A stretch of DNA of 63,883 bases, filler included, from Hyphochytrium catenoides (GCA_900088475.1; 5 parts of 5 records of this genome joined end to end with filler, not necessarily neighbours in it); one strand, 5' to 3'; positions 56,092-60,427 are shown, counted from the first letter of the whole stretch. Program-made: numbers and translations. Notes: a model not told the origin generated them from the sequence alone.

Positions 56092-56144
56092 ATGCTTTCT
56101 GAAAACGAACTCCCAGCGCCTCTACTTCTGACTTCACTATACAG

Positions 56145-59100
56145 TACAAGCTGCTCCGTCTTCTAAAGTTGATGACCTTACCCGTTCGTTGATAGGGAGC
56201 GGCGACAATTACGTCCAGAGAGAGCAGGTCCTAAAAATGGGCTTGGAAAGCAGTCTTTTCCCCATCCCTGCTGGCGAGGATTGGCTCTCGCCCGCCCAGA
56301 GAGCGCTCGTTAGAGAGCGGTTTATGGATGAGGTGGAGGAGGTTAGAATGGCGCGAATTTCCGATGCCTACCGGGGACTAGGGGAGGTGATAAATCTGTA
56401 CCTCCTCTGGTACTTCCAAAAGGAGGAGAAGGTGATGATGGGGGGTGATGATCAGGAGGGGAATTCACCACCAGTGCCGCCAATGACGGACCTCAGCGAC
56501 CCAAAAACCTTTATTGAGCTCATTCACCTCTGTCGGGCCGAGTTTTGGGTAGAAGATGAAGCAGGTTCTTCAACGATCCTCCACCAAAAGCGCAGGAAGA
56601 GGAAAGTAAGCCCATCGGTGCTTGCGTTTATGGTAAGTAGTGATAATGGTCTCATTGCCATTCTCAGGTCGCCATTCTATATGTGTACTCGCTTGGTCTT
56701 CTCATTGCCATTTCTTTTTTAATCATCATCATTAATTCGCTGTGGTACCACTGCTTATTAGTGGCCAAGATTTTTTTCTTTTTGGCGTTTGTGCTCATTT
56801 GAAGAATGAAGGAGCGAGAGTAGTTGCCTTTCCTCTTCCTCTATCAACCTCTCTTCTCCTCTCCGTGTTGTCCTCCTCCACTAACACAAGTGGATGTATC
56901 CTTCTTCAGACCGCATTAGAGTCAGGGGAAGATGGCCTTTCCCCTGACCTCTTTCAGAAATTTGCAAAAAGCTTAGAGGATGAAAATGCGGTAACAGCAA
57001 CTGCCAGACAGTTGCACACCAACTTCCTAAACGCACTAAAGGTATTGTATGGTTCTTTTGCCGATCTCTTTACTCTTCCCCCAAAGCTTGCTCTATGAGC
57101 TGATATTCTTACCTATCTTCATATTCTTGCTTTTTCTCAACCTCTGTCTCTCTTTATATTCCTCCCAGCAACTCTTTGTGGACGGCTAGCCATCATATTA
57201 TCAGGATGCGTTTGTCAACTATTCCTTTTTTGATCCTGATCACTCTCAATTACGCCACCTATTTTGAGTGATGGATTAGACGACTCACTATTCTCTTTCA
57301 CTTAACCATATTCATCGAGGGACCCTTCTTCGAGCGCCAATTGGGGTATATCCGTGTCGCTCTTGCGCACCACCACCTGCAGGAGAGGGAATTGTTGAGG
57401 ATCCGTCAAATCATCAACAATTGGCCCCAAACCGTCGTCCAGACGGTAAACATCGAAGAAGATAACAGCGACGATGAGGTGAGGACAATATGAAGTCACT
57501 CTTTGTTCTTCTGCCTCTTTTCCTCTGTGCTTCTTTTGTAGCACAACAGGCAAACCTACAATAGCCCTGGAATAAGTGCCCCTCTTTTTGGCCCGCCTCC
57601 TAAATTTTGCTGTCACTATTCATCATCAGGAGCTCGGTGATGCTAACCAAGGGGCTTCTTCTTCATCATCGAACTACGATGTGGCAGCTGCCGCTGCGAT
57701 TGCCTTTCCGGATCGACCGGAGCTGATCGCCTTCATTCGGGAAGAGCGGGCGGCCTTCTTGCTGGGCTTCTCATCGAAGAAGAAGAAGGTCAAAGTAAAA
57801 AAGAATCCATCATTGCTTCTCCACTTATTACAGTCTGATTGCCCTTGCCCACAATCATTCTCCTGGCGCTTTGATTCGTCCTCGCTTGATTGACTTATAA
57901 TCCCATTTGCATTTGGAATTAACATTTGCATCATTTCTTTCTCTTCTACAATGCGCTAAATAGTACCGGGTTGTGCTAATTTTATTGACTACCTCAATCT
58001 AATAGGTGGGAGTAAGGCTATCTCGCGTACTCATAAAGTCCCACCCGAACTACTTCCTTCGAGTCCTGCGACGATTCCAGATCGCCATTTTCAGGTCTTT
58101 GGCGGAAAGACCTGTGAGGGCGAGACAAGAAGGAGGAATTCGTCAACCGAGGGCACAACGTCGTCGGAGCAAAAGGAGGCGAGGGAAAGAGAGAAGAAGC
58201 AGAAGGAGAGAGAGGAGAGAGAGAAGAAGGAATAGGAGATCAAAGGGCTTCCGCAAGGAGGAAGCTGTGCGCCAGAGCTCTGAGCCTGCTGTCGCGTCAG
58301 CAGCAATAGCTCCTTCTCTTTCATCTCTTCCTGCCCAAGAGCAAGAGCGAGTGGAAGCGGAAAGAAGAAGGCGCATGAGAGAACGGTGAGTGCAAAGGAT
58401 GGCTCTTTGCACAGCTGTCTTTGTCATCCTCTGGTCCTCCTCCCTCCCACTCTTCAACAGCTCCTTGTTGTACAAAAAGCCCCTAATACTAGCCATCTTG
58501 TCCTCTACTTTGATGTTGAAAAAACGTTAGCCGGCGCGAGAAGCAGCGAAGAAAGCGACGGCGTCGGAGGGAAAGGCGACAGAGGTCCGCGGAGATGGAT
58601 AATAGGTAGGCGCTTGAACACTAAATCGAATGAGAGAGTGGCAGAAGCAGCGCAGATGCTAATACTTTTTGCATAACGGCCTGTTGTTTGTTATTGCTTT
58701 TAGTGGAGCTCATCAGGACGACGAGAGCAAACCCACTCCCTCATCCGGCTCTGAAGTGAAGAAGAAGAAGTCCGACAGACAGGCAAAGGGCCCCAAGATG
58801 TTTACCCTAGCACCCCTCCCGGGCTTTGGTCGACATCATCTACGCATGGATGTTCGGGTATTACTGTAAGTCGCATTACGAAGCAGCACCAGCTTTTTTC
58901 TTTTCATTCAAAGCCTAGCTCTCCTCCTCAACCCATTTCCTCTCCTTTCAATAATATTCTGCAAAAACGATGCCAGCAATCTTCTAGACCTCACGAGGGC
59001 GGGACACTCTAAGGAGCTATGGCGCTTGGTCTTTGACCTGAGGCCAAATCGGTCACGTCAAGGCTCCGGTAATCCACGAATGTTTGGAGGTAACCATTAC

Positions 59101-60379
59101 TACTATACTATCCTCCACTCTCCATCCTCTACTAGCATTGCTTGCTTAGTAATTCTCATCACCTATCCGCATCCTTCATCAAAAGCTAAAGGATATATTG
59201 CTCACGACTCAAGTACTCACCATCAATCTCCTCGCCCTTACAAACTCTAGAGCTCATCGACACGGACGGCGTGACGCTCAGCGCCCACTATCATATTGCT
59301 GGGAGGCGGCCGGCTGGGAACTCCTCCTCTAGTAGCAGCTCAAAGGATGAGTGGGGAAAAGCTACTCCCCATGCGTACCTTTCTCCTGGTGAGGGATAGA
59401 GTGAAGCCTCTCAACGTATTATGCTTTCCTTACTTCATTCGCCATGTGACAGTGTCTGTTACGGGTCTATCCACTCACTATCTACCTATTGTCTCCTTCT
59501 TCTACGTGCCTTTTTTGCGTCGTCTCTTTTTCTTGGTTGTGTGCACTTCTTAGCTGCAATCTGTAAATAGGGCTACAGCTACAACTCTTCGCGTCTTACC
59601 ATCTTTTATGACTGTGTACTTGTCCGTCAGACTGTTACCCTAGGGTACTTGGAGTTGACCGAGGCAGAGTCAACATCTTTTGTGGAGTTGACGACGCCGG
59701 GCAGGTGTACAACTATACGCGGGGTCGCTACTACCAGGAGTCCCACTTGAACCTCCAGTCCACGAAGCTTGCGGCCTGGAATCGCGCCAACGAGAGATAC
59801 CTCGCGGCTTTGCAAGCCCTTGCGGCCACTGGAGGATCAAAAGGTATGTTGGTCCTCGTCGCCTTATCTTTTCCCTCTCTATAGTAGTACTCTTGTTGTG
59901 AAGCGTGGGCTTCATCCCTTCTCTTTGAGATCATCATGCAGACACCTTCATTCTGCTCCTGGGCGTCCACATTCTCTCCCTTCGCACTGCGTTTGCAGTT
60001 TTTCCCCTTTCTCTAGACCTTTCCAATGAATTAGACTAATACTGAAGCTTCCGTCTCTCTCTCTCTCTCTTGCTACCACTTATTATCAAACGTGTGGCTG
60101 GCACAGTCGTGGCTCTGGAGACATTTGTTTCCTACCTCAGAGCCACGCGCCAACACTATAACGAGCTGGCTGACCACCTCCGGAAGCGTCGCGTTGCCAG
60201 GACAAGTTTTGACTTTTTTATCAACAAGAGAAAGAGCATCAACTCCTTCTTAAGGTCTTTGGTATATGCTCCTTCTGGAAGGGGATCGTCAACTCCGCAG
60301 GGTTCCAGGGCGACGATGCTGGACGTCCCAGTGCTGGCCTACGGGGACGCTCGTCTTAAGAGCAGCGGAAAGGGAGAGC
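56145..60379 (+). mobile_element. Fanzor1-type (TnpB-derived RuvC) nuclease gene, intron-rich, truncated at both contig ends
   Basis: Spliced motifs in Fanzor1 order: VLKMGL..RISDAY..INLYLL; ARQLHTNFLN; FIREERAAFLLG; FTLAPLPGFGRHHLRMDVRVL; LWRLVFDL; FGELIDTDGVTLSAHY; RuvC-I RVLGVDRGRVNIF (Asp codon 59657-59659); YTRGRYYQES; RTSFDFFINKRKSINSFL; VLAYGDARLKSSGKGE. RuvC-II Glu, Zn finger and RuvC-III would lie past the contig end at 60427. Confidence 0.85.
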
Positions 60380-60427
60380 GTATACCAAAGACCTTAAGAA
60401 GGAGTTGATGCTCTTTCTCTTGTTGAT

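Follow-up and report, generated by a model that had tools for sequence, protein, structure and literature searches.

The question raised by positions 56145-60427 of a 63,883-nucleotide (nt) window of Hyphochytrium catenoides DNA (GCA_900088475.1; five parts joined end to end with filler) is whether they hold, as a sequence-only reading had proposed, an intron-rich gene for a Fanzor1 RNA-guided nuclease that is hidden from the open reading frame (ORF) track. The piece examined, 56092-60427, has 4336 nt and a GC content of 0.49; it was translated in every frame, and homology searches of the gene model were run exon by exon. The locus is very probably a Fanzor1-family gene, a nuclear genomic fragment interrupted by at least 10 spliceosomal introns and descended from TnpB. 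By homology, its product would function as an RNA-guided nuclease.

Stop-free stretches joined by 10 introns gave a model of 11 exons on the plus strand, extending from 56145 to 60380. All introns (98-278 nt) are of the GT-AG type, with 20 of 20 splice sites canonical and all phases consistent. Donors include GTAAGT, GTGAGT and GTATGT, and the 3' parts of the introns are pyrimidine-rich. The GC content of the introns was 0.38-0.47 and their C+T content 0.61-0.67 in nine cases and 0.47 in intron 6, compared with values of 0.54 and 0.45, respectively, in the exons. Because of the 10 GT-AG introns, their polypyrimidine-rich 3' parts and this contrast in composition, the gene is assigned to a eukaryotic nuclear genome. 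About 765 codons are free of stops and frameshifts over the 11 exons, 734 of them counted from the ATG at 56237, and with about 2.3 kb of coding sequence the 10 introns correspond to a density of about 4.4/kb. The many-exon gene predicted earlier was thus recovered, but not the predicted number of at least 12 exons, since the piece contains 11. Likewise, the start of the proposed span was exact, a splice acceptor lying precisely at 56145, whereas its end was not the end of the gene but a fold-back at 60381-60427, which is described below.

The four motifs on which the sequence-only reading relied were all found on the plus strand at the places given for them: IDTDGV at 59256-59273 in exon 9, VLGVDRG at 59645-59665 in exon 10, YTRGRYYQES at 59714-59743 and VLAYGDA at 60331-60351 in exon 11. 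The RuvC-I Asp, which had been called intact, is encoded by codon 59657-59659 and aligns with the family-invariant Asp; the following codon, 59660-59662, encodes Arg. The RuvC-I exon is indeed missing from the ORF list. No ATG, GTG or TTG precedes the motif in its stop-free stretch, and the motif escapes the list because the first such codon in frame, GTG 59705, lies downstream of it.

For the assignment to a family, relatives of exon 10 were collected. A word search with this exon gave one match, P0001, a 67-amino-acid (aa) fragment from a 543-nt contig of NCBI GCA_041442895.1, which is 83% identical and diverges from the window precisely at the exon-10 donor. Word searches with exons 11 and 1 gave no match, and metagenome and viral contigs yielded no relatives when scanned with back-translated patterns from the exon-10 alignment. 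An exhaustive HMMER search with a two-sequence exon-10 profile returned 15 proteins, and two matches of this profile came from the cryptophyte Hanusia phi (EukProt). P0002 and P0003 were rejected as false positives, as they are FG-GAP repeat proteins in which the profile had picked up a short G-V-D-D-x-G stretch. Six TnpB-like proteins carry PF07282 (Cas12f1-like TNB), namely P0004, P0006, P0008, P0010 and P0013 (529-813 aa) and P0014 (248 aa). Alignment scans added 53 metagenomic and 9 giant-virus (IMG/VR, GVMAG) loci, and exon 10 matched 47 of 65 related loci in tblastn. The aligned relatives show TDGV..H, V-I-x-x-D-P-G-R, QYY..S, AYGDA.F..G.GE..P, (D/N)E(F/A).T, a CxxC zinc finger and SRD.NAA.NI, which together are, by their motifs, the full split-RuvC layout. 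Those with a complete C-terminal part have DPGR, the Glu of DEF.T or NEAYT, the CxxC zinc finger and RD.NAA.N.

Profiles of these relatives led to the solved Fanzor1 structures. The eight-member profile A2 matched PpFz1 (9cf0) at 3e-18, SpuFz1 (8gkh) at 8e-20 and GtFz1 (9cer) at 3e-12, and the 28-member profile A4 matched the same chains at 7e-29, 5e-26 and 4e-17. No TnpB or Fanzor2 chain was among the PDB matches of A2. With A4, no TnpB, Fanzor2 or Cas12 chain was found in the PDB at E-values up to 10, the next match being LaTranC at 0.13. A PDB phmmer search with the single relative P0013 found none of the solved Fanzor1 chains. In the window, exons 10 and 11 matched A4 at 4e-17 and 7e-14 (for these and the following exon E-values, the searched database contained just 11 pieces), and hhalign against A2 gave 99% for exon 10 (8e-18) and 97.6% for exon 11 (4e-12). 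The proposed Fanzor1 identity is upheld because these two exons match the family profile and this profile matches three solved Fanzor1s, but no TnpB, Fanzor2 or Cas12. The profile similarity to TnpB, Fanzor or Cas12 on which the sequence-only reading had staked its identification was thereby found, to Fanzor1 chains, by way of the relatives' profile.

The exons were then placed on the 598 positions of A4. Exon 1 (56145-56632), from the N-terminal helical or REC-like part, gave a weak colinear match to positions 41-77 (E 0.016). It starts at the acceptor AG 56143-56144 in phase 1, and its frame is open from 56132. Because it opens at an acceptor and the ATG at 56237 lies inside a family-conserved strand, at least one short 5' exon is probably located off the piece. 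Exon 2 (56910-57041; GT-AG, phase 0) matched positions 116-147 (7e-5) and exon 3 (57320-57478) positions 149-187 (6e-7). An alternative acceptor of exon 3 at 57335 was disfavoured, since 57320 directly adjoins exon 2 in the profile. Exon 4 (57630-57794) is a variable region placed by phase consistency only, with no significant profile match. Exon 5 (58006-58385) matched residues 242-370 of P0013 in BLASTP (8e-10, low complexity), and exon 6 (58531-58605) follows from the splice model. These two exons contain an Arg-rich stretch (58123-58260 and 58531-58605, with runs RRR and RRRRR) that separates the N-terminal helical part from the WED strand. The insertion is common only to P0013 and P0006, the two closest full-length relatives, and could be an internal nuclear localization signal (NLS), a nucleolar signal or an RNA-binding segment.

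Toward the catalytic part, exon 7 (58704-58865), with the WED-like strand FTLAPL...RMDVRVL and its invariant Pro and Asp kept, matched positions 238-265 (4e-5), and exon 8 (58977-59089) gave a weak colinear match to positions 287-304 (0.16). Exon 9 (59251-59388), in which Thr, Asp, Gly and His of IDTDGV..H are conserved, matched positions 311-333 (1e-4), and the RuvC-I exon 10 (59631-59843) matched positions 343-405. Exon 11 (60107-60380), at positions 412-484, encodes a helical insert followed by VLAYGDA..GKGER just upstream of RuvC-II, and is cut by the contig end. Eight exons are thus colinear on A4 in ascending order and neighbours abut, exon 2 for example ending at 147 and exon 3 beginning at 148-149, which independently supports the splice model.

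A distant relative bears on the age of the introns. The locus L067, a 975-nt JGI metagenome contig carrying P0005, is itself intron-bearing, with at least three introns, and shows identities of 41% with exon 10 and 30% with exon 11. Two of its introns occupy the same codon and phase (phase 1) as introns 9 and 10 of the window gene; therefore at least two introns predate the split of the two sequences. Introns shared by such distant homologues support the long residence that had been suggested earlier: the lineage would have been in eukaryotic nuclei for long, or would spread together with its introns. The shared introns do not discriminate between domestication and a mobile element that carries its introns along. 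The exon-11 homologue of L067 continues without an intron through GKGEQAVP...LIDENLTT..CHKCDEC, which includes the RuvC-II Glu and a CxxC, and so indicates what should follow exon 11 in the window. A donor was also noted in L067 after the zinc-finger region, at about 890.

The contig itself stops short of this region. Its last 47 nt (60381-60427) reproduce 60220-60266 of exon 11 exactly, but in inverted orientation; as computed, the inverted repeat comprises 52 nt with one mismatch, at 60380. This base gives GAG CGT (Glu-Arg), which matches the family motif G.GER.vP, so that genuine sequence extends at least as far as 60380. The remaining 47 nt are probably a fold-back artefact of assembly or amplification, and the stop at 60406 is not the end of the gene because it lies inside the fold-back. 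An Rfam scan of the piece gave no match, the 3' end of the gene being located beyond it.

Comparison with known systems places the gene among the Fanzor1s. The relatives' profile aligns over nearly the full length of SpuFz1 from Spizellomyces punctatus, PpFz1 from Parasitella parasitica and GtFz1 from Guillardia theta, and shares with them, in the same order, the N-terminal helical part, the WED strands, the RuvC-I D-P/x-G, the helical insert, GD..G.GE..P, RuvC-II, the zinc finger and RuvC-III. This likeness is visible at the profile level only. In contrast to the solved proteins, the sub-family of the window gene carries an Arg-rich insertion, about 150 residues long, inside the protein; in the window gene itself, Arg takes the place of Pro behind the catalytic Asp, and the C-terminal fifth is missing beyond the contig end. 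Jiang et al. 2023 (PMC10530073) described four Fanzor1 clades and one Fanzor2 clade, the acquisition of NLSs and intron densities of up to about 9.6/kb, matching host genes. The intron-rich structure claimed for the window gene was confirmed, and its density lies inside this published range. Among the intron-bearing Fanzors, which are TnpB-derived and contain spliceosomal introns like the window gene, CrFNuc of Chlamydomonas reinhardtii is a Fanzor1c with 3' guide RNAs (PMC10530073). CrFNuc is present in six copies in Helitron2 elements and its 3' guide RNA was sequenced, whereas the window gene is cut by the contig end. Prokaryotic TnpB (IS200/IS605, IS607) and Fanzor2 belong to the same superfamily, and the relatives share with them the split RuvC and the PF07282 TNB zinc finger. 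Unlike these proteins, the window gene has a long N-terminal extension and spliceosomal introns. An identity as Fanzor2 or prokaryotic TnpB, which are compact (about 400-600 aa), was rejected, given no TnpB or Fanzor2 chain among the PDB matches of A2 and A4 and more than 550 codons upstream of RuvC-I.

The piece covers about 80% of the protein, from the N-terminal helical region through the NLS-like, Arg-rich insertion and the WED-like strands to RuvC-I and the helical insert behind it. If the gene works as its homologues do, its complete product would be expected to associate with an omega-RNA made from the 3' end of the gene or element and to cut guide-complementary DNA with its split RuvC site. 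The window VLGVDRG aligns with V-I-x-x-D-P-G-R, invariant in 28 relatives, with retention of the catalytic Asp, and 25 of the 34 covered positions with at least 80% family conservation are kept, this Asp included.

A number of observations weigh against this interpretation. Pfam and NCBIfam scans of single exons returned noise only and PDB phmmer searches with exons 10 and 11 gave no match, so that the link to Fanzor1 is transitive, through the relatives. Some 30 codons separate the end of the piece from the expected position of the RuvC-II Glu, and the contig does not reach profile positions 485-598, which contain this Glu, the zinc finger and the RuvC-III Asp. No terminal inverted repeats (TIRs), other terminal repeats or transposase were found within 4.3 kb, the piece being shorter than the gene. 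The Pro directly after the RuvC-I Asp, invariant in 28 of 28 relatives, is Arg in the window, the equally invariant Ile is changed to Leu (I557L), a 96%-conserved Trp is Ala (W650A) and an 89%-conserved Arg is Ser (R662S). DRG had been described as a variant of the more usual DPG; it is a variant, but its weight was understated in view of the invariance of the Pro, and the nearest copy, P0001, has the usual DPGR. Chance resemblance of motifs or a chimeric assembly, with no TnpB-family gene at all, would account for single exons without direct Pfam or PDB matches and for a contig end that is demonstrably artefactual. Against this stand exon-to-family E-values down to 4e-17 and eight exons ascending in the profile, for which the odds by chance are about 1 in 8!, with adjacent exons abutting. 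Such a coincidence is scarcely conceivable, and is already refuted by the exon-to-profile and relative searches.

The altered residues bear more directly on the state of the copy. The four changes at strongly conserved positions, together with 15 extra residues ahead of VLAYGDA compared with the family, could point to a decaying, non-functional relic of a Fanzor1 element. However, the frames and splice sites are intact, which speaks against a pseudogene in decay: the long open reading over 11 exons would be unlikely in a sequence that decays neutrally and is 83% identical to its nearest copy, and we consider a relic quite improbable. Alternatively, the gene may be a domesticated, Fanzor1-derived host gene, vertically inherited, intron-laden, non-mobile and perhaps impaired as a nuclease while serving a new RNA-guided or DNA-binding function. 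The intron positions common to the window and the distant L067, the Pro-to-Arg change beside the catalytic Asp, W650A and the 4.3 kb free of TIRs and transposase agree with this, as does the finding of only one other close copy (P0001) among gene-called ORFs of comparable length in the word searches. On the other hand, the gene retains its catalytic Asp and the majority of conserved positions, the piece is too short to show element ends, and the searched ORF collection may lack the small ORFs of this genome, as the window ORF 56237-56719 has no entry in it. Moreover, I-D-R-G is also carried by RuvC-I of active Cas12a, and Arg after the Asp therefore need not inactivate the enzyme. Domestication appears unlikely. 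More specifically, the window gene, P0001 and L067 might form a Fanzor1 lineage of low copy number, passed on vertically, with ancient introns in common, an Arg-rich insertion and, in the window, an altered RuvC-I, which was domesticated for a new and possibly nuclease-independent RNA-guided function by analogy with the bacterial TldR-type domestications of TnpB; this is a speculative and rather unlikely proposal. A Fanzor1-family gene, as set out above, is the reading we favour.

The surroundings of the relatives were also inspected. Relatives at L008, L010/L039 and L025/L028 lie directly beside DDE_3 (Tc1/mariner/IS630-type) transposase genes of 297-338 aa, which is consistent with carriage in such transposons. 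At L003:8393-11737, on an 84-kb giant-virus-like scaffold, the gene for the Fanzor1-like protein P0004 is located 175 nt downstream of a gene for a 477-aa Resolvase-domain protein (serine recombinase), an IS607-like pairing. In the literature, this pairing is ascribed mainly to Fanzor2. The genes for P0013 (L001) and P0006 (L002) are intronless and their proteins only about 55% identical. Directly after the stop codon, L001:3641-3705 and L002:1944-2016 share a conserved non-coding block, TAAAGTAGCC..CTGTCTCTC..TGAGAACATGTCTG.GCATGG, beyond which the sequences diverge. The block was found in none of the other retrieved related loci and is a candidate for the omega-RNA scaffold and element boundary of this sub-family. 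In L002, a 24-nt tandem repeat at positions 3-215, upstream of the N-terminally short P0006, encodes an ORF with an RGG-type Gly/Arg repeat. At L066:1440-3459, on a 13.8-kb ENA contig, a relative is broken into four consecutive or overlapping plus-strand ORFs, which reflects either a frameshifted or degraded copy or indel errors of long reads.

Intron-rich Fanzors and eukaryotic Fanzor1 proteins have already been published (PMC10530073), and the window gene changes nothing in the current picture. It illustrates that an RNA-guided nuclease gene can be recovered where introns fragment it beyond the reach of ORF-based annotation. The family is of interest for genome editing and for the question of how TnpB adapted to eukaryotes; the window gene would extend it by a divergent sub-lineage of Fanzor1 that has an internal Arg-rich insertion and keeps introns in common among distant members.

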